Sequence record: NC_070963.1
Strand: one strand, 5' to 3'
Length of the DNA stretch: 64,000 nucleotides
Shown: piece by piece, positions 23,500-32,296 of the stretch
Layout of the letters: each line of letters opens with the position of its first letter
Position numbering within the stretch: the first letter of the stretch is position 1
The notes under the pieces: generated by a model
The model's input: the letters and a program-made list of their open reading frames with translations, nothing else
Databases searched by the model: none
Told to the model about the DNA's origin: nothing
Program-made: the position numbers and the translations under genes

Positions 23500-23570
23500 T
23501 CCCCCACCCATAAGGATTCCCACACCCACACAAAAAACGCATAAGACCTGCATATATAAACAATATGAAT

Positions 23571-23730
23571 CTCGACGAGACCTGCAGGGTTGCATCTCGA
23601 CGAGCATTATGCTATAATACACAAGTCACTCACAGAATCTCGACGAGTTATGTACGACGACTACGATTTCGAATATACATACACCAACGATTATGCAGAT
23701 CTCGACGAGTATATGCAGGATCTCGACGAG
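23571..23730. repeat. CTCGACGAG cluster A (5 copies)
   Basis: Copies at 23571, 23596, 23639, 23701, 23722. Confidence 0.9.
23590..23618 (+). promoter_or_regulatory. sigma70-type promoter overlapping a CTCGACGAG copy
   Basis: TTGCAT-N17-TATAAT. Confidence 0.65.
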
Positions 23731-23787
23731 GATTATGCACGTGATGGTCAAGATTATGAATCGCTTGCATATCGACACTATGCATGA
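23650..23787 (+). CDS. small acidic D/Y-rich protein
   Basis: ATG at 23650 downstream of the promoter. Confidence 0.55.
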   Translation: MYDDYDFEYTYTNDYADLDEYMQDLDEDYARDGQDYESLAYRHYA

Positions 23788-23981: not shown

Positions 23982-24165
23982 GAATCAAACAGTCTATTAC
24001 GCAAAAGGTGGAGCATTATATCAGACTCTGATCGACTGTTACAATTTCTTCAACACCGACAAAGGGTCTCCTGTGCGCGAGAACACAGATCAGATCGAAC
24101 GGATTCGGATGCTTGTGACAGATCAACCACTGGCACAAGACTGGGTGCAACTGGAACTGTTCTGA
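23965..24165 (+). CDS. hypothetical protein
   Basis: ORF track. Confidence 0.5.
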   Translation: MKCFIENQTVYYAKGGALYQTLIDCYNFFNTDKGSPVRENTDQIERIRMLVTDQPLAQDWVQLELF

Positions 24166-24199
24166 CTTATATTTGTTCTGTTCGACACCTGAACCACTC

Positions 24200-24367
24200 A
24201 TGTCCATCTACACTGACAACGGATACGCAAACCGCAAAGAGTATCTGAACGAACTCCGCGAAGAGTATGGTGCTGATCTGGTCAACACCCTGATCACGGT
24301 TCTTCCTGCATCGGAGGACTTCGACGGTCTGATCACTTCGCTGGAAGACGCAATGGACGATTTCTGA
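24200..24367 (+). CDS. hypothetical protein
   Basis: ATG at 24200; MSIYTDNGYANRKEYL... Confidence 0.65.
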   Translation: MSIYTDNGYANRKEYLNELREEYGADLVNTLITVLPASEDFDGLITSLEDAMDDF

Positions 24368-24378
24368 ACTTATAATCT

Positions 24379-24411
24379 TCCCCCTATGAAGTGATTCTTA
24401 GGGGGATTTTT
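24379..24411 (+). terminator. intrinsic terminator
   Basis: TCCCCCTA/TAGGGGGA stem followed by T tract. Confidence 0.7.
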
Positions 24412-24638
24412 ATTGCTAATTTTTGATACAACAAAAACCACTTTTTGGATTAGACTTTTTTGAAGTCTTGTGGCAACCCATTGATTCAATTGTCTACTGA
24501 TGTATAAGTCCTAGCGAGTTCAATTCTTTTTATGAGTTTTCTAATCTGACTCTTGACCCCGTAGGAGAGTTCAGTAACGATCACTCTGAGAATTGTTTTA
24601 ACTCTATGGTATACATTAGTTAAGATTATTTATACATT

Positions 24639-24697
24639 GTGACACTTGAAAAACTGGCACAAGACCTCTTCACACCCCACTGAAACTCCTGTATCTT
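24639..24697 (+). promoter_or_regulatory. early promoter cassette
   Basis: GTGACACT-N6-ACTGGCAC; TATCTT at 24692. Confidence 0.65.
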
Positions 24698-24730
24698 AAG
24701 AGAGTCAACCACAGACACCTCAACCACATC

Positions 24731-25201
24731 ATGGCAACCAGAGGAAGAATCGGCATCGAACTCAAGGATGGTTCTGTGCTTTCTGTCTATACTCATTGGG
24801 ACTCATATCCTGAACACAATGGCAAAATCCTGGTTCAACATTATCAGAACCGTGAAGATGTACAAGAACTCATTGATGGTGGTGGTATTTCATCACTGCG
24901 GACTCGCGGCACATGGGATCATTCTTCTGCTCTTCGTGATGAGAATGGAGAGTACATTTCTGATGCTGCAGGTTATCTGAAGTATGAGAATGATCGGGAA
25001 CCTCAACCGCTCTATTATACTGAGCGGGGAGAAGAACTTGACATTCAACATACTTCCTTTGATGAGTTTGTTTCTGGCAAACTTGGTGGGGAAGAGTATG
25101 CTTACATATATGACCTGAATGGTAACTGGAAAGCATACAAGACTGGTCTGTTCTCTCATGTAGAACGTGTGGAGATTCCCAACTATGTGACAGCAGCATA
25201 A
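24731..25201 (+). CDS. conserved phage hypothetical protein
   Basis: TR..I......SVY.HWD.YP...G..L N-terminal motif and C-terminal EYAY.Y....W. Confidence 0.75.
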   Translation: MATRGRIGIELKDGSVLSVYTHWDSYPEHNGKILVQHYQNREDVQELIDGGGISSLRTRGTWDHSSALRDENGEYISDAAGYLKYENDREPQPLYYTERGEELDIQHTSFDEFVSGKLGGEEYAYIYDLNGNWKAYKTGLFSHVERVEIPNYVTAA

Positions 25202-25245
25202 GTGTCACAAGGGGCACCTAGGAGACCCTACAGTGCCCCTATACT
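25187..25245 (+). promoter_or_regulatory. early promoter cassette with stem-loop
   Basis: GTGACAGC-N6-AGTGTCAC, AGGGGCAC/GTGCCCCT inverted repeat, TATACT at 25240. Confidence 0.7.
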
Positions 25246-25825
25246 GAACAAGTCAACCAACGACACCCAAACACATGGAAGACACCCTCTGGACTGAAAT
25301 TGCAGACGCTCCCGGTGAAATCTGGGACATGGACATCCCAGAATTGAATGAGGATTATCCTAGTTCTGAAGAATCATTCAATGCTTTTCTAGCAAGCAAT
25401 TGGGATTTCTGATGGTCACTTTGATTCTGGGCGCCAGTATCTTGACAATGTTCGGCGCCATGTTCTATTATGAGGATCGGATGGGGTTGGGGGTCTATGA
25501 TCCGGATCCATCTGCTTCCTACCGTCATCGGAACCACAACAAATGAAAACCACAACACACCCCATCAAAGACTTTTTCACTGATGAAGAATGGGATCTGA
25601 TCTACAACTTCATCGGCAATGCTCTGGACGATGATGACTTTGATCCAGAAGATGTTTACTCTATTCGCAACAAGATTCACTCTATCTTTAAGGAAGAATG
25701 ACACCTGATACTCTGAACTTTCAAGGTGACGCTGTGACAGTTCTAGGACTGGTCGGGGTCATCTCCACTGGCATCATCCTGGTGCTATGCTTCACTCGTT
25801 ACTTCAATTCACCCCTGAGGAAGTG

Positions 25826-26020
25826 ATGCAATTTCAAGTTACTGAGATTGAGTTTGATTTTGATGATGAAGAACTTTCTTCATGTGATAAAGATGAAATC
25901 ACCTCACAATACATTGGTGACATTTGGGAGGCAGATGATGAAGAAGATCTTGTAGAAGAGATCACCGCTGCTTCTGGTTGGTGCATCAAGTCTATTGATT
26001 ACCGTCACGTTCTGAAATGA
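25826..26020 (+). CDS. acidic hypothetical protein
   Basis: ATG at 25826 within ORF track 25787..26020. Confidence 0.6.
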   Translation: MQFQVTEIEFDFDDEELSSCDKDEITSQYIGDIWEADDEEDLVEEITAASGWCIKSIDYRHVLK

Positions 26021-26142
26021 CCAAAGAACTTCTGATTGCTCAACTTCGTCTAGGTAAGAATGGGAACGACATCCTTTCGATTCTTGATGCACTGTGTGAT
26101 GGGATGGACAGCAGTGAATCTCGTCAAGATCTTGTGCCAACC

Positions 26143-26252
26143 CTAGACGAGATTCAATTCTAAACTCGACGAGATGTGCCACTTCATCTAGTGGCACATT
26201 CATTCTCGACGAGCACAGGCACATCAACTAGATTATGTACATTCTCGACGAG
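26143..26252. repeat. CTCGACGAG cluster B around a palindromic promoter
   Basis: CTAGACGAG at 26143; CTCGACGAG at 26165, 26205, 26244; palindrome GTGCCACT-N6-AGTGGCAC at 26176-26197. Confidence 0.85.
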
Positions 26253-26258
26253 CACATC

Positions 26259-26447
26259 ATGCAAACTGCATCTGTCATTCCTATCTCGAAGAAAGCGAAG
26301 AATCGTTTCGCCAATCTTATGGATCGCATCGAGACTTGTATCATTGAGCAACAACAAGGCAACAAAGTGTTTCTCACATCATTGAATGGTAAAAATCACT
26401 TTTGGGCAATGCTTGACAATGACCCTGATTGGATGATACAATTCTAA
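26259..26447 (+). CDS. hypothetical protein
   Basis: ATG at 26259. Confidence 0.55.
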   Translation: MQTASVIPISKKAKNRFANLMDRIETCIIEQQQGNKVFLTSLNGKNHFWAMLDNDPDWMIQF

Positions 26448-26537
26448 TATAAGAGAGGAAAGGGTTTGCCTCTCTGAAATAAAGTTACCCAATGTGAAAG
26501 AGAACAGATAATTCTAGCATGGTGTGGGTGAGATTGG

Positions 26538-26566
26538 GGGTCGGGGTGGTGCCTGACCCTTTTTAT
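26538..26566 (+). terminator. intrinsic terminator
   Basis: GGGTCGGG/CCTGACCC stem plus TTTTT. Confidence 0.7.
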
Positions 26567-26594
26567 TAACATAACGTTACTATTATATTTTTTT

Positions 26595-26657
26595 GCAGGG
26601 GCGGTGGCGATGTATTGTTCAGTAGGGATACCCTTCCCCCGTTGGTGCTGGTTGTCC
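26595..26657 (-). ncRNA. candidate small ncRNA, copy 1
   Basis: Aligns with 28147-28207; no ATG; leftward -10-like TATCCT upstream. Confidence 0.45.
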
Positions 26658-26801
26658 TATTAGGATACATCACAGCAGACCCTAGAACGCCCCTGATGGA
26701 CAGTTCGCAAGGTGGCACAAGGTCGCTGGATCTGGTCGGTTCTGGTGGGGCATGATTCCCCCAACGGCGCACCACTGACGCCGCCCACACCCCACAGATC
26801 C

Positions 26802-27269
26802 ATGACCACCATTCAAGTTGTTATCAACGGCAATCAAGTTCAGGGTCAGATTGATGAGATTGCAAAGATTCTGAGTATCTTCAATGATACTCTAGCGCCA
26901 GCAATCGCTCCTGTTGTTTCTACTGAACCAGCAGAACTTGCACCTTTCAATGCTTTTCTGACAGTAGAATTGACTCCCTATTTTGGTGCAAAAGGTGCAA
27001 CAACCATTGTCAATAAGTTAAAACTTTGCCGGGAATGTGGCGACTTTCGCTATCTGATTCCAGTGTATAGGTTGGCAGTTGGTGATCTTCAAAAGCGGCA
27101 ATTACTTAAGGTTGTCAGTGCTGTTTATCGTTATAAGTTTGGTGGACATAAGAATCCGGAACAGTATTCTTTGCGGTCTGAGATTAAGTATGCAAAGGCA
27201 TGTGATCATTGCGGTTCATTGGCACAAGTGTTAGTTAATCGTTTGACTGCAGAAGGTCTGTGGAAGTGA
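26802..27269 (+). CDS. hypothetical protein
   Basis: ATG at 26802 after the promoter cassette at 26697-26756. Confidence 0.65.
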   Translation: MTTIQVVINGNQVQGQIDEIAKILSIFNDTLAPAIAPVVSTEPAELAPFNAFLTVELTPYFGAKGATTIVNKLKLCRECGDFRYLIPVYRLAVGDLQKRQLLKVVSAVYRYKFGGHKNPEQYSLRSEIKYAKACDHCGSLAQVLVNRLTAEGLWK

Positions 27270-27325
27270 CAATTTATTAAGTGTCACAAGGGGATCGGCA
27301 ACGGTCCCCACTGTGCCCCTATACT
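27266..27325 (+). promoter_or_regulatory. early promoter cassette
   Basis: GTGACAAT-N6-AGTGTCAC; TATACT at 27320. Confidence 0.7.
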
Positions 27326-27349
27326 GATCTCAGTTCACACCACTGAACC

Positions 27350-28084
27350 ATGCTGAACTTCGCTAAGGGTAACGCCAAACTCGGCAAGCAAACCCTAATC
27401 TTTAATCTACCTGCTGGCAAAACTTGCCCCGGTGCATTATTCTGCAAGTCTTTTGCAGTCGTTGATGACAATGGCAAGCGCCACATTCAGGATGGCGAAC
27501 ACACAATCTTTCGGTGCTTTGCTGCATCTGCAGAGGCACAATACGATGCACCTTACTATTCACGCAAAGACAATCTGCAGCAGATTGTTGATGCTTTGCA
27601 GAATGGAACTGCTGCCAATTTGATTCACAATTCTATTCAAGAACACCGCACACGCAATAGCAAACTGGTGCGGATTCATGAGTCTGGCGACTTCTTCTCT
27701 GGTGCATATTTGGATGCCTGGATTGAAGTTGCAATCCGCAATCCTGACCTTAAGTTCTACTGCTACTCTAAGAGTTTGCAATTGTTTCTGAACTTTAAGT
27801 TGCCTGCTAACTTCTACATGACTGCATCTTATGGTGGCAAGTGGGATCATCTTATTGATGAGGGATTCTTTACTCGCTACGCTAAGGTCTTTATGACTGA
27901 AGATGAGGCAAACGCTGCAGGGTTGGAAGTAGATCACGATGATTCACACTGTTTCGGTGATAAACCGTTTGCGCTGTTAGTGCATGGAACACAACCTAAG
28001 GGTAGTGTATGGGGCAAAGCGATTCGCGCCCGTCGTTCTAATCATCAGTTCTCAGGTTACAGTAAGAAACCCGCTGCAGTGTAA
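27350..28084 (+). CDS. Gp88-family protein (radical-SAM-like fold)
   Basis: TCPGA..C...CFA, RIHESGDFFS..Y...W..VA...P...FY.YSKS motifs. Confidence 0.7.
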   Translation: MLNFAKGNAKLGKQTLIFNLPAGKTCPGALFCKSFAVVDDNGKRHIQDGEHTIFRCFAASAEAQYDAPYYSRKDNLQQIVDALQNGTAANLIHNSIQEHRTRNSKLVRIHESGDFFSGAYLDAWIEVAIRNPDLKFYCYSKSLQLFLNFKLPANFYMTASYGGKWDHLIDEGFFTRYAKVFMTEDEANAAGLEVDHDDSHCFGDKPFALLVHGTQPKGSVWGKAIRARRSNHQFSGYSKKPAAV

Positions 28085-28093
28085 GGTACATTT

Positions 28094-28121
28094 AAGGGGG
28101 GGCAATCGCTCCCCTTTTTTT
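28094..28121 (+). terminator. intrinsic terminator
   Basis: AAGGGGGGGC-AATC-GCTCCCCTT plus T tract. Confidence 0.75.
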
Positions 28122-28146
28122 ATATTTTGTGAGGCATTATTTTATG

Positions 28147-28207
28147 GCAGGTTCGGTGGCGACCTTTGATCAGGCAGCGACCCTGCTGCCGTTGGTGCCG
28201 ATTGTCC
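28147..28207 (-). ncRNA. candidate small ncRNA, copy 2
   Basis: Aligns with 26595-26657; perfect GGCAGC/GCTGCC stem; leftward TAGGAT upstream. Confidence 0.45.
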
Positions 28208-28333
28208 CCTTATCCTACAGGATCCCAGCGCCCATAAAACCGCCACAATGGACAGTTCGCAAGGTGGCACAAGACCCTGTAGACGGAACCCATTGGCACC
28301 CTGTATGATTCTCTCAGTTCACACCACTGAACC

Positions 28334-28636
28334 ATGTTTTCCGCCACACTGACCAATCCCCAATCCTTCGGCGCAACCTACCAATGGGCGATCCTATCGG
28401 TTCTGCCAATGGATTCTGATAAAAAGCGCCACGGCATGAACTCTCCGGAGATCAAAAAGGCGTTGGGTTTGAGTAACGCTGCCCGCACAAGTCTGTGCCT
28501 GATGCTAAAGGAAATGGCACAAAAAGGTCTTGTGCAACGTTATGATCTGAAGATTGGCAATCGTCGCATTGTTTCATACAAGCGTCTGATTCCTCTCCGG
28601 AAGCGTGAAAGAATCGCCCGCTTCATTGGCATCTGA
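28334..28636 (+). CDS. winged-helix DNA-binding protein
   Basis: NSPEIKKALGLS...SLCLMLKEMAQKGLVQR fits a MarR/HTH wing pattern. Confidence 0.55.
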   Translation: MFSATLTNPQSFGATYQWAILSVLPMDSDKKRHGMNSPEIKKALGLSNAARTSLCLMLKEMAQKGLVQRYDLKIGNRRIVSYKRLIPLRKRERIARFIGI

Positions 28637-28811
28637 TACACTACAGGGGGAGAAAACCTCCCCCATTAAACTACACCAAACCACCATGACATTATCACCA
28701 GCATCTAATCTTCAAACCCGCCAGATCGTATGGGTCCGCAACGGTGTTAAGATACATTCAGCACCATCCTACATCTGGTCTGCTCTAGGTCGTAACAACA
28801 AACTTTGAATC

Positions 28812-28940
28812 ATGGAAACTATTCTGACCCCCGATGAGATTCTCCAGTTAGTTACCACTGGAATGGTCGAATTGTCTGAAGATCTTATCATCAGAATGAT
28901 AGAAGATCTCGACGAGAATACACATACAATTCTCGTCTAG
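28812..28940 (+). CDS. small hypothetical protein
   Basis: Hand-translated 42 aa METILTPDEILQL... Confidence 0.45.
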   Translation: METILTPDEILQLVTTGMVELSEDLIIRMIEDLDENTHTILV

Positions 28941-29005
28941 ATTCACATAATCATCTCATACATTCTCGACGAGATGCACACAATCATCATACAATTCTCG
29001 TCGAG
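28908..29005. repeat. CTCGWCGAG cluster C
   Basis: CTCGACGAG at 28908 and 28965, CTCGTCTAG at 28932, CTCGTCGAG at 28997. Confidence 0.85.
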
Positions 29006-29020
29006 AATATACACATTTCA

Positions 29021-29458
29021 TCACACAATACAATAACCTTTTGTTTTTCCAATAGTATATAAAGGTCCTGTGTTTATGTTATTTTCTCTACAAAACTTTC
29101 TAAGATTGTAAACTTCTATAATATCACCTATAGGAGTTTTTATTTTATAACATTTTGCATGAGAATGTTCTGCATTATGTTGATTAGTAACCCATTCTAA
29201 ATTATCAACATGATTATTAGACTTATCTTCATCAATATGATTAACTTGTGGCAAATTGTTTGGGTTGGGAATATAAGTTTCTGCTACTAATCTGTGCATA
29301 TATTTTCTACACTTAGTCTTGGAATCATACAGATCAATATAATAATAACCCCGATAGTTTTTCTGTGGTGTGATTAACTTAAGCGGGTTTCGTTTGTTAC
29401 TATAAATGCGCCCATCTTCTGTCAGAAAATAACCTTTATAAATTGGATGTTCGCGCAT
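29021..29458 (-). mobile_element. HNH homing endonuclease (NUMOD4/HNH_3-type)
   Basis: HRLVAETYIPNP.NLPQVNHIDEDKSNNHVDNLEWVT; ATG at 29458 (MREHP) preferred. Confidence 0.88.
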
Positions 29459-29620
29459 ATCTTTATAGGTATTGTTTGTAATTATAACATAATTATAATT
29501 AACATTCAAACCACAATGGCAGCGGATACCATGTCTGCCGCCGATCCGTCAAGGTCTGACCCATTAGCGTTGCTGATCAAACGGATCTGGTTTTTTGTAT
29601 CCTGCGATACCATTTGATGG

Positions 29621-29674
29621 TTGACCTATCAGGGTCTGGCGCTTAAGTTGGTATCGAACCTTGATAACTGAATA
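29621..29674 (+). promoter_or_regulatory. sigma70-type promoter followed by an rrn boxA-like element
   Basis: TTGACC-N17-TAAGTT, then GAACCTTGATAACTGAATA at 29656-29674. Confidence 0.5.
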
Positions 29675-29806
29675 GATGATCGGATCGCCGCCCTAGGGGC
29701 GGGGTGTGTCGCGTGTCGGGCGGGATCCCACGGGCACCGATTCTCTATTCTTTATAGTTTCAGGTTTGCTTTTAGGTTACACTTTTTCCCTTTCTTTCTT
29801 TACACA

Positions 29807-30097
29807 ATGGATCTGCAATCTAACGCTTCCAAAGTTGTTGAAATGGACGCCAAAATTAAAAAGTTGACCGCACAGTTTAACTCTCTTAAAGATGAGTTAA
29901 TTAGTCAAATGATCGCTGAGAATGTATCAACTATCGACATTAAGCGCCGAAAAGTTTGCCTCTGCCAGAGGCAAACTAAGGACTTTGGCGACACAATTGC
30001 CCGCCTAGAGTTAGAACTTAAAGCGGAAAAGAAAAAGTTAGAAACTCTCGGAGAGTTCACTATCTCCAGTGTTTCAAACTTCATTCAAGTCCGCTGA
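29807..30097 (+). CDS. hypothetical coiled-coil protein
   Basis: ORF track. Confidence 0.6.
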   Translation: MDLQSNASKVVEMDAKIKKLTAQFNSLKDELISQMIAENVSTIDIKRRKVCLCQRQTKDFGDTIARLELELKAEKKKLETLGEFTISSVSNFIQVR

Positions 30098-30155
30098 CAT
30101 TTAGGGGAGGTTATTCCTCCCCTTTCTTTACACTCTCACCATACACTTTTCTACC

Positions 30156-30341
30156 ATGCAAGTCTACACTTTCGAGGCAACTTACATTGCCGATGGTATT
30201 GAAACCGATTCAATTGCGATCAGCGCTGCTAATTTAACGGATGCAATGATCGCCGCAGCGCGTGAAATTAACGGCGTCAATTCCTTCGCTGATTGTCTGC
30301 TTGGTCTAGAGTTGTTGTTTGTAACTCCTGATCAGGACTAA
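30156..30341 (+). CDS. hypothetical protein
   Basis: ORF track; flanked by hairpin modules. Confidence 0.55.
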   Translation: MQVYTFEATYIADGIETDSIAISAANLTDAMIAAAREINGVNSFADCLLGLELLFVTPDQD

Positions 30342-30401
30342 GTTACACTTAAGGGGAGACAATTCTCTCCCCTTTCCCTACATTCAACCGCACTTAAAAT
30401 C

Positions 30402-30608
30402 ATGCTCACAGAATATGCTACCGCTGCAGACTTCCAACGTTGGAGAGAACAGGCAGAGAAAATGACCCTTGCTGAACTATATTATGCTGCTGCAGATTGC
30501 AGGCAGGCAGAGTATGCAATGAGAGGGTGGAATCCTATTAAAGAGGGTTACTATTCTGATCAGGCATGCACGTTTGGTGATGAAATTAGAAGGCGCAAGA
30601 TGCGATAG
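30402..30608 (+). CDS. hypothetical protein
   Basis: ORF track; flanked by hairpin modules. Confidence 0.6.
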   Translation: MLTEYATAADFQRWREQAEKMTLAELYYAAADCRQAEYAMRGWNPIKEGYYSDQACTFGDEIRRRKMR

Positions 30609-30665
30609 GTTAGTTACACTTAGGGGTGACATCTCACCCCTATTCTTTCCACCTTTCACCACACT

Positions 30666-31076
30666 TTGATCATGACCGCTACACTTTCCCGCTACAAACT
30701 TGACTGGCAGAATGGCACACAGTGGGCAAACTTTCCCGAACTGGGTGACATTTACACTGACGATGTTACCTTCTACACTGTAGATAATTATCGTTATGAT
30801 GTGTCGTTTCATGTAGGTTCTGGGCGCAGAATTGGCATCTTGTTTGTCACTGTAGATCAGCAAGATCCGCAAGGTTATGATCAGTCAATGACCTATTGTT
30901 TGGGTCAATTCTATACAAATGAGGGTGCAATGTTGTTCTCTCAGTTTGCACTTAACCACTTCATTGAGACTGAGAAGTGGTTAGTCTGCCCGTCATTTGA
31001 GGCAGTAGAGTACATCGACGGCGAACCACATACGCTCGCTGGTGATGAGATTGTGAGCGAACTTTACCACTGGTAA
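30666..31076 (+). CDS. hypothetical protein
   Basis: ORF track; start probably ATG at 30672. Confidence 0.6.
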   Translation: MIMTATLSRYKLDWQNGTQWANFPELGDIYTDDVTFYTVDNYRYDVSFHVGSGRRIGILFVTVDQQDPQGYDQSMTYCLGQFYTNEGAMLFSQFALNHFIETEKWLVCPSFEAVEYIDGEPHTLAGDEIVSELYHW

Positions 31077-31310
31077 GTTAATCGTTCGTGGGCGGCAGTT
31101 AGTTACACTCTGCCGCCTCACATGCGACTGATTAGGATACCTTATTCGTTCGTGTTTGACAGTTAATTACGTCTTATGGGCGGATCGGGGGTATGCGATA
31201 TAAAAACGCATAACTACCCTAAACTATAAAGTGTTACCCAAGCGACTTAAATATAACACTCAAATAAAAAAATTCCGCCCTATATAAAAACGAAAAAAAG
31301 TTTTACAGAA

Positions 31311-31487
31311 ATGAAAAAAAATTCCGGAAATATTTTTGAACCCATAGAGGTTGATCCAATCAGTGGGGATTACTTTATTAAAATCCCAGAGCAAATTATG
31401 AATGAACTCTCATGGTATGAAGATACTGAGATTTGCTTTACTCTTGATGGGGATGAAGTCATTCTTTCTGAACGTGAGAGTGATTGA
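31311..31487 (+). CDS. AbrB/MazE-like small protein
   Basis: Hand-translated 58 aa ...YFIKIPEQIMNELSWYEDTEICFTLDGDEVILSE. Confidence 0.6.
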   Translation: MKKNSGNIFEPIEVDPISGDYFIKIPEQIMNELSWYEDTEICFTLDGDEVILSERESD

Positions 31488-31512
31488 CAAAGAATACATA
31501 ATAGAGTATGAT
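31484..31512 (+). promoter_or_regulatory. sigma70-type promoter
   Basis: TTGACA-N17-TATGAT. Confidence 0.75.
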
Positions 31513-31534
31513 CTGAAAGTAAATTATTTCAATT

Positions 31535-32296
31535 ATGGCAAAAGGATTTACAGTAAAAGCAAAATCGCCCGTTACACAAAAACCAGTTACAGAAGAATGG
31601 GATTATAATCTTGCAAGAGAAATGGTCAAAGGAAAGTCCATTGTCTTTTGTCTTCCTGGTCGTGGGGTTTCATATACCTATCTAAAAAACTTTGTACAAC
31701 TCTGTTTTGATCTTGTACAAAGTGGTGCAAGCATTCAAATCTCTCAAGACTATTCTTCAATGGTTAACTTTGCCCGTTGTAAGTGTCTTGGAGCAAATGT
31801 CCTGAGAGGTCCAGATCAGATTCCTTGGGATGGAAAACTCAAATATGATTGGCAACTCTGGATTGACTCTGACATTGTTTTCAATACTGAAAAGTTTTGG
31901 CAGTTAGTCCTTATGGACAAAGACATCGCTTCTGGTTGGTATGCAACAGAAGACGGTCATACTACATCAGTTGCTCATTGGATGGAAGAAGATGACTTCC
32001 GTAACAATGGTGGTGTGATGAATCATGAGACCGTAGATAGCATCTCAAAGCGTCGTAAACCATTTACTGTAGACTATGCAGGTTTTGGTTGGTTGCTAAT
32101 CAAACATGGTGTCTTTGAGCATTCTGAAATGAAGTATCCATGGTTTGCTCCTAAGATGCAAGTCTTTGAGTCTGGAGAGGTTCAGGACATGTGTGGAGAA
32201 GATGTATCATTCTGTTTGGATGCAAAGGAAGCAGGATTTGAGATTTGGTGCGATCCTCGCATTCGCGTTGGTCACGAAAAAACAAGAATTATTTGA
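31535..32296 (+). CDS. conserved cyanophage GT-A glycosyltransferase-like protein
   Basis: WIDSDIVF DxD motif, GFGWLLIK..VFE, GEDVSFC..A...GF.IW.D....VGH. Confidence 0.7.
   Translation: MAKGFTVKAKSPVTQKPVTEEWDYNLAREMVKGKSIVFCLPGRGVSYTYLKNFVQLCFDLVQSGASIQISQDYSSMVNFARCKCLGANVLRGPDQIPWDGKLKYDWQLWIDSDIVFNTEKFWQLVLMDKDIASGWYATEDGHTTSVAHWMEEDDFRNNGGVMNHETVDSISKRRKPFTVDYAGFGWLLIKHGVFEHSEMKYPWFAPKMQVFESGEVQDMCGEDVSFCLDAKEAGFEIWCDPRIRVGHEKTRII

Follow-up and report, generated by a model that had tools for sequence, protein, structure and literature searches.

Genomic setting of the element

What is the role of a block of about 60 nt that occurs twice, next to unrelated small genes, in the genome of a freshwater cyanophage? 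The 64,000-nt stretch of DNA analysed here (the window) belongs to Synechococcus phage S-SRM01, a freshwater T4-like cyanomyovirus with a genome of 240.8 kb (MW015081.1; record coordinates are window coordinates + 62000). A preliminary description of the window had placed two copies of a candidate non-coding RNA at 26595–26657 and 28147–28207, and both positions are correct. A gapped pattern derived from the flanks has exactly two matches in the window (26602–26648 and 28154–28198), with none expected from shuffled sequences, and an HMM built from the whole family found no third copy in the rest of the 240.8-kb genome. The S-SRM01 genome paper mentions neither promoters nor intergenic elements.

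The pair sits within a run of small plus-strand ORFs, a variable island; the G + C content is 41–45% at 24–32 kb and 30–37% in the surroundings. The two copies bracket the genes of a 155-aa protein belonging to no known family and of a GP88-family protein, and each is placed between the terminator of the previous gene and the operator and promoter of the next. A repeat of about 62 nt had been reported; both copies of it are present, but the homology is wider and covers the whole intergenic region from terminator to start codon, with a mean column identity of 77%. The duplicated parts are the terminator, an AT-rich tract, the conserved block, the operator, the promoter and a 5′ UTR hairpin. The features of the two cassettes are as follows.

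Cassette of copy 1
26536–26561, plus strand: intrinsic terminator of the upstream plus-strand gene, a 10-bp stem followed by a T-run
26595–26655, minus strand: candidate conserved RNA body with predicted start at A 26655 (covariance model 73.9 bits, E 7.9e-13)
26622–26640, minus strand: hairpin with loop AGGGTA, 5 bp including one G.U, outer G-C across a bulged A
26661–26667, both strands: symmetric -10 box, TAGGATA on the plus strand and TATCCTA on the minus strand
26696–26721, plus strand: 26-nt unit, candidate half-degenerate dyad operator
26751–26756, plus strand: -10-like hexamer CATGAT of the downstream gene's promoter, 29 nt past the operator
26802–27269, plus strand: downstream gene of 155 aa (counted from the ATG), with two Cys-x-x-Cys motifs and no match to any family

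Cassette of copy 2
28094–28117, plus strand: intrinsic terminator of the GP88-family gene
28147–28205, minus strand: candidate conserved RNA body with predicted start at A 28205 (covariance model 107.9 bits, E 2.6e-20)
28173–28190, minus strand: hairpin with loop AGGGTC, six Watson–Crick pairs
28211–28217, both strands: symmetric -10 box, TATCCTA on the plus strand and TAGGATA on the minus strand
28248–28273, plus strand: 26-nt unit, candidate half-degenerate dyad operator
28304–28309, plus strand: -10 hexamer TATGAT of the downstream gene's promoter
28334–28636, plus strand: downstream ORF of 100 aa, without GenBank annotation

Distribution of the family

Relatives of the element were collected from IMG/VR with sequence patterns. 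The first pattern was too loose: about 115 of its 120 loci (L002–L121) were chance matches in G + C-rich contigs, which were filtered by hand. Two sharper patterns gave dozens of true matches, and the exact 24-nt operator unit had none in IMG/VR. A covariance model with a single specified helix was then built on 25 copies that MAFFT aligned without gaps; it yielded 83 matches, 63 of them distinct, among the IMG/VR loci and the window. The covariance-model total is 86 copies in 60 sources, namely IMG/VR contigs, one contig from a pond MAG and the cultured phage DSL-LC03; the sources are about 60 phage contigs, mostly freshwater.

Among 185,579 species genomes there were 36 pattern matches, 35 of which are due to chance; the sole real one, a 7.9-kb contig of the pond MAG with two copies, is probably a mis-binned phage contig. 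As judged from these searches, the element is not present in bacterial genomes. By BLAST it was found in no cultured phage record besides S-SRM01 and DSL-LC03 (from Dishui Lake), the latter having one copy inside an unannotated gap of 800 nt, matched at about 82220–82311 and with a predicted minus-strand start near 82300. Marine cyanophages gave no BLAST likeness to the element, and the marine phage Bellamy has only an operator-like stretch in common. The copies are typically paired, 0.7–3.1 kb apart, and lie on the same strand in all 26 pairs. Truncated and internally duplicated copies occur in three of the contigs (L162, L158 and L165).

No Rfam family was matched. Rfam 15, whose library includes CsrB/RsmZ-type sponges, riboswitches and the known cyanophage motifs, gave no match at the gathering score over the whole window and none at E ≤ 10 over 26400–28400; two relatives gave only sub-threshold noise. 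ARAGORN predicted no tRNA or tmRNA gene in the window. A site of the integron attC type was considered and rejected: the two conserved arms of the element are direct repeats of each other, not inverted ones, and no integrase was found among the neighbouring genes scanned. On these comparisons, the element looks like an undescribed RNA-like family.

A covarying hairpin

The preliminary description had drawn attention to stems that differ entirely between the two copies while loop and flanks are kept. This is indeed the case: on the minus strand copy 1 has the stem GGGGA/TCCCT and copy 2 the stem GGCAGC/GCTGCC, their loops AGGGTA and AGGGTC are one base apart, and 44 of the 63 columns of the element are identical. 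In the family, the hairpin has a stem of 5–6 bp, in 24 distinct versions, and a loop of 6 nt. Of the 362 cells of the model-fitted alignment, 98.1% are standard pairs, and double changes are seen in five of the six pairs; the covariation score is 0.817, against 0.226 ± 0.021 for shuffles and at most 0.13 for slid partners. Because a model-fitted alignment leans towards the structure, the count was repeated on a structure-blind MAFFT alignment (A3), in which 100% of the cells are paired, double changes occur in four of the six pairs and the score is 0.687 against 0.252. A family with compensatory hairpin changes, as first suggested from the two window copies, is therefore supported on both alignments. 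RNAalifold predicted no structure on a plain MAFFT alignment of 49 copies, because a class of copies with a bulge moved the 3′ stem by one column; the shift was solved by the gap-free subset (A3) and by model-based alignment (A4).

The central G-G-T of the loop is nearly fixed. Among the distinct sequences, the minus-strand loops are AGGGTC (20), AGGGTA (19), GGGGTA (16), GAGGTA (4) and AAGGTA (1). Outside the hairpin, four columns right after the predicted start are unchanged in all distinct sequences that have a base there (52–63 of 63), and a seven-column stretch of the 3′ arm is kept in 54–63 of 63.

One helix only is supported. There is no complementarity between the two conserved arms, and the alignment columns support neither a second helix nor a pseudoknot. 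In single sequences the loop, or else the 5′ strand of the stem, can also pair with the C-C-U-G-C block further downstream; this gained no support, since the columns concerned are invariant or vary out of register. Folding of single sequences is ordinary (z-scores from -2.2 to +1.0), and copy 1 alone has a minimum-energy fold that differs from the conserved hairpin. The case for the hairpin, drawn as it is from aligned sequences, is one of comparison, not of thermodynamics.

Strand of the fold

The preliminary description had assigned the fold to the minus strand, and the wobble pairs point the same way. All 29 wobble cells, at three pair positions, are G.U in the minus-strand sense; the plus strand would have A.C in their place, and the opposite case is never seen; 26 of these G.U cells are at one pair position and share ancestry, so that there are fewer independent events than cells. 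At this main position, G.U persists through at least seven different stems in which the inner pairs have been exchanged, and its alternatives are G-C, C-G and a single A.G mismatch only. Overall, 98.1% of the cells pair on the minus strand and 90.1% on the plus strand. Such a bias is expected of an RNA, or a single strand, of minus polarity, and would not be expected of duplex DNA or of a plus-strand RNA.

A symmetric -10 box and a predicted start

A box of the form T-A-n-n-n-T-A lies four bases upstream of the block on the minus strand. Among the 63 distinct sequences, its T, A, T and A are conserved in 63, 63, 63 and 59, respectively, and the three inner bases are free. Seven bases past the second T, the distance of a +1 position, there is an A in 55 of 55 sequences, mostly preceded by G; at the mirror position on the plus strand an A is found in only 24 of 51 copies. 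The predicted minus-strand starts in the window are thus 26655 and 28205; that of copy 1 was placed by the -10 spacing together with the invariant A, and is to be read as an inferred position. Further upstream on this strand there is no conserved -35-like hexamer, but only a T-rich stretch and, after it, G-G. Neither copy contains an ATG on this strand, as had been remarked before.

In bacterial bidirectional promoters, the -11A and -7T of two opposed -10 elements pair reciprocally and the starts are 18 bp apart (PMC10268837). Promoters with such a symmetric -10 have an A at the start site, and one arm often yields a non-coding RNA (PMC10268837). The box of the family has this reciprocal -11A/-7T arrangement. 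The two copies had been described as lying on the reverse side of bidirectional promoters, which holds in so far as the element is found just downstream, on the minus strand, of an invariant box of the symmetric -10 type. The -10-like box that had been proposed beside the 26-nt unit is, by contrast, not the relevant one: the boxes that matter are those at 26661–26667 and 28211–28217, 29–31 nt to the left of the unit.

Operator, downstream promoter and neighbouring genes

The 26-nt unit, ATGGACAGTTCGCAAGGTGGCACAAG, has exactly two occurrences (26696–26721 and 28248–28273), where none would be expected. It had been presented as an identical palindrome beside each copy; the identity is confirmed, but the unit is half-degenerate and no strict palindrome. 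It belongs to a dyad family, GTG(A/C)CA-N10-TG(G/T)CAC, with seven occurrences in 24115–28270; the full operator form is a 7-N10-7 inverted repeat. The spacing of 29–30 nt between operator and -10 recurs at 27282 and 28265. To the right of most copies of the family there follow, in this order, a dyad operator, a -10-like hexamer at a distance of about 29 nt, a short 5′ UTR hairpin and a start codon. In the window copies, the centre of the operator is 52–57 bp from the predicted minus-strand start and from the predicted gene start, and one bound dimer could in principle serve both predicted starts.

The orientation of the element relative to the flanking genes is always the same, and the genes themselves are diverse: a crude ORF call around the 86 copies gave about 31 downstream and 19 upstream clusters. 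The commonest downstream gene is the family of the 155-aa protein, found at 29 of 83 copies. Apart from GP88 and HNH proteins, the neighbouring proteins have no informative family or PDB matches. The 100-aa ORF downstream of copy 2 shows a weak hint of the MarR type; its single-sequence structure model (pLDDT 43) is too poor to use.

Terminators and the 3′ end

Each element has a plus-strand terminator on its left, and the distance between the two is nearly constant. The terminators are of two sequence types, each with its own compensatory changes, and homologous hairpins are found at the same distance in most relatives. The preliminary description had each element ending next to such a terminator; the terminators are there (26536–26561 and 28094–28117), but they define no 3′ end. 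When read on the minus strand, at least four U in the 8 nt after the stem are seen in 5 of 22 hairpins, and an A-run precedes the stem in 19 of 22; the hairpin finder was crude and missed imperfect stems. Since a minus-strand U-run is rare after the stem, the terminators do not define the 3′ end of the RNA, and a bidirectional terminator in this role found no support.

A candidate minus-strand RNA

The alignments establish that the family exists, that its hairpin covaries, on which strand it folds, and that the -10 box and the start base are invariant. The wobble bias on the one hand, and the invariant box with its start base on the other, are independent of each other and indicate the same strand, which favours a minus-strand RNA. 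Sequence comparison makes it somewhat probable, in our view, that each copy encodes a small RNA on the minus strand or represents the conserved 5′ part of an antisense transcript read from that strand. We infer that the element is transcribed and that its loop and arms are read by a sequence-specific partner.

The following course of events can be proposed. The symmetric -10 box (26661–26667 and 28211–28217) would fire leftwards, and the RNA would begin with the invariant A found seven bases away (26655 and 28205). A single hairpin of 5–6 bp, with a nearly unchanged G-G-U in its loop, would form within roughly the first 60 nt and be flanked by two C/A-rich, single-stranded arms that hardly vary. 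The transcript would then continue through an A/U-rich tract into the back of the upstream gene's terminator hairpin, and the sequence gives no definition to its 3′ end. It would measure about 60–75 nt with an end in the A/U tract and about 115–130 nt with one at the back of the hairpin, or might extend further as an antisense RNA of the upstream gene. The unit moves within a promoter–terminator cassette that separates unrelated small genes in freshwater T4-like cyanophages, and the RNA may be a trans-acting regulator or a decoy produced together with the neighbouring gene. These surroundings correspond to the PeSL promoter–terminator cassettes of T4-like phages (PMC4122927), with the block as an extra part.

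The near-invariance of the unpaired columns suggests that the partner is itself invariant, such as a protein or a conserved host RNA, and not the variable neighbouring genes; our preferred candidates are a protein and a host RNA that does not vary. In a duplex scan against the 516 translation start regions of S-SRM01, the best energies were no better than those of shuffled queries. A bolder reading, which we regard as rather improbable, is that of a portable RNA module carried on exchanged cassettes and acting on the transcription or defence machinery: it might, for example, resemble put RNAs in modifying the polymerase by which it is transcribed, or be a decoy for a host RNA-binding or immunity protein. 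If this were true, every cassette would carry its own copy of a counter-measure or regulator. The roles suggested in the preliminary description (protein sponge, anti-defence RNA and replication primer) have gained no evidence from the present analysis.

Regulatory RNAs of cyanophages are almost unknown, and cassettes of the PeSL type had not been clearly seen there. The analysis provides a searchable family with a calibrated model, start sites predicted to the base in two cultured phages, and a unit that moves with promoter–terminator cassettes between unrelated genes. If the RNA is real, it offers a handle on the control or protection of variable early-type genes in freshwater T4-like cyanophages; even an untranscribed element would serve as a clear marker of cassette shuffling in these genomes.

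Alternative explanations

The main rival to the minus-strand RNA is a role at the DNA level, which we consider unlikely but the least so of the alternatives below. The element would then be part of a mobile cassette similar to the PeSLs of T4-like phages, serving as a homology patch or a protein-binding site in recombination or promoter control, with no functional RNA; the hairpin, if relevant, would form in single-stranded DNA. PeSLs consist of a stem-loop, an AT-rich region, a promoter and a start codon, and have a role in gene shuffling (Arbiol 2010; Comeau 2014, PMC4122927); previously they had not been clearly found in cyanophages (PMC4503421). Like PeSLs, the present cassettes are intergenic modules that recur in variable regions of T4-like myoviruses and border unrelated genes and exchange sites, and both run from a terminator stem-loop through an AT-rich stretch and a promoter to the start of a small gene. 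The S-SRM01 cassettes have the terminator, the AT-rich tract, the -10-like box and the start codon, and the family borders genes that differ between relatives (the 31 or so downstream and 19 upstream clusters), as PeSLs do. A DNA-level role would further agree with the duplication of the whole intergenic cassette, its location in a GC-rich island of small ORFs, the same-strand pairing at 0.7–3.1 kb (26 of 26), the widely differing flanking genes, the truncated or internally duplicated copies in L162, L158 and L165, and the layout and shuffling role described for PeSLs (PMC4122927).

There are also differences. The S-SRM01 cassettes add a block of about 60 nt with a covarying hairpin, a symmetric -10 box and a dyad operator. 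PeSL promoters combine a -35 with a -10; most copies here have no -35. PeSLs are present in many copies per genome, while this element has two copies and the dyad-type promoters number seven in the island; this count of two against seven also speaks against a DNA-level role. Moreover, the PeSL stem-loop corresponds to the terminator, not to the extra hairpin, and neither homology patches nor duplex sites need compensatory stem changes or a wobble bias restricted to one strand.

Alternatively, the element could be a plus-strand leader, transcribed rightwards from a -10-like box on its left or by read-through, and acting in cis on the downstream gene. An AT-rich, -10-like box is in fact conserved on the plus strand to the left of the element (e.g. 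TATTTTA at 28138–28144); in three contigs (L151, L168 and L172) a plus-strand promoter close to the consensus lies about 45 nt upstream, and no terminator separates it from the element; and the fully Watson–Crick stems would fold on the plus strand too. We nevertheless judge this improbable. Read as plus-strand RNA, 29 cells would be A.C mismatches and none would be G.U, and the distance from the left box to the block varies (7 nt in copy 1, 2 nt in copy 2). The downstream genes, in addition, are unrelated and have their own promoter and 5′ UTR hairpin, which makes a gene-specific leader unlikely.

A primer RNA of the origin type, in which a promoter would give a structured, G + C-rich transcript that primes from an R-loop at an AT-rich unwinding tract, seems very improbable. 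It is suggested by the order of promoter, body (about 55% G + C) and A/T-rich tract of 25–40 nt, but the two copies are 1.5 kb apart and flank two small genes, a pairing that recurs in relatives; they lie in a variable island beside many unrelated genes, the RNA would be C/A-rich and not G-rich, and no other origin-like feature was seen.

A very short protein-coding gene on either strand, for which one could cite the plus-strand ATG of copy 2 at 28144 (open to a stop at 28306–28308, within the ORF 28129–28308) and the SD-like purine loops and in-frame stops readable on the minus strand, is scarcely credible and a conserved ORF was ruled out, given that the ATG is swapped for other triplets in many copies, that the block spacing differs by 1–2 nt (27 versus 29 nt) and leaves no shared frame even between the window copies, and that the stem changes are compensatory and not synonymous.

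Comparison with other small RNAs and promoters

The candidate minus-strand RNA can be set beside three phage RNAs. The OOP RNA of phage lambda is a short antisense RNA made convergently to a protein gene, and its functional part is the overlap. The S-SRM01 candidate is likewise convergent to a protein gene and could overlap its 3′ end; here, however, the conserved part is in the spacer, and the overlapped gene varies from copy to copy. The put RNAs of phage HK022 are structured antitermination RNAs of about 70 nt that act in cis, placed right after the promoter in two copies per phage with a terminator downstream; they have two stem-loops and are made from the coding strand of the early operons. 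The candidate resembles them as a structured RNA directly after a promoter, in two copies per phage and with a terminator downstream, and differs in its one supported helix and in being on the strand opposite the genes. The CfrI RNA of cyanophage S-PM2, an antisense RNA tied to the psbA and homing-endonuclease locus, is also a non-coding RNA of a T4-like cyanophage on the strand opposite the genes, as is predicted here, but it does not recur as part of a cassette.

Divergent transcripts that arise at symmetric bidirectional -10 elements (Warman 2021; PMC10268837) share with the candidate the T-A-n-n-n-T-A box and the A at the start. They are usually unconserved by-products, whereas in this family the 60 nt are better conserved than the neighbouring genes and include a covarying helix. 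If the RNA is real, it would be unusual in that the ‘wrong-way’ arm of a symmetric promoter yields a conserved product.

The dyad operator and its island

At 24000-32000 lies an island in which the G+C content rises to 41-45%, against 30-37% in the surrounding genome region, and this difference suggests that the island was acquired from, or exchanged with, phages of higher G+C content. The dyad GTG(A/C)CA-N10-TG(G/T)CAC, on which the operator units of both cassettes are built, occurs at seven sites clustered within 4.2 kb of the window (24115-28270) and at four further sites elsewhere in the record.

Positions of the dyad in S-SRM01
Window: 24115, 24639, 25187, 26176, 26697, 27266, 28249
Record: 50174, 57328, 63263, 190579

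Each of the seven clustered dyads lies about 30 nt upstream of the -10-like hexamer of a small gene, and the perfect 7-N10-7 inverted repeat is present in relatives. The dyad looks like an operator for one dimeric regulator governing the promoters of the island.

A second short motif, containing CTCGACGAG, has about a dozen occurrences at 23566-23734, 26115-26252 and 28904-29013; they are spread over both strands and lie partly in inverted pairs (e.g. 28959-28974 with 28996-29011).

Genes of the cassettes and their 5' UTR

The following features accompany the two copies of the element in the window.

26712-27269, plus strand: annotated CDS downstream of copy 1, with a GTG start inside the operator unit
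27329-27349 and 28313-28333: conserved 5' UTR hairpin TCAGTTCACACCACTGAACC, identical in sequence at both places
28334-28636, plus strand: open reading frame (ORF) of 100 aa, carrying the conserved 5' UTR of the cassette
29021-29509, minus strand: HNH/NUMOD4 homing-type endonuclease gene, just past the copy-2 cassette gene and on the opposite strand

For the CDS downstream of copy 1, the promoter, the 5' UTR and homologues from other contigs indicate that the true start is the ATG at 26802. The 100-aa ORF is unannotated in GenBank, where no CDS is recorded between record positions 90084 and 91021. A weak hint of a MarR-type winged helix (E 0.047) came from this ORF, and its single-sequence structural model was too poor for use.

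In several cassette genes the 5' UTR hairpin, also found at many further loci, directly adjoins the start codon, and among relatives it takes the start codon in. No evident Shine-Dalgarno-like sequence accompanies it.

Copies outside S-SRM01 and variant copies

The cultured phage DSL-LC03 carries one copy of the element (L221:5994-6085, corresponding to about 82220-82311 of OR003938.1; 49.6 bits with the covariance model), inside an 800-nt stretch without annotated genes, which provides a second isolate in which expression of the element could be measured. Two copies 1.5 kb apart are present on L191 (JAIYDG010000246.1), a 7.9-kb pond contig binned as a Bacteroidetes MAG and probably a mis-binned cyanophage fragment.

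Variant copies were found at three loci outside the window (L158:60-185, L165:6172-6297 and L162:850-900). In two of them about 30 nt of the 5' arm is duplicated internally, and the other ends after the 3' arm, where it is joined to an operator-promoter. Such internally duplicated and truncated, fused forms are signs of recombination within the element.
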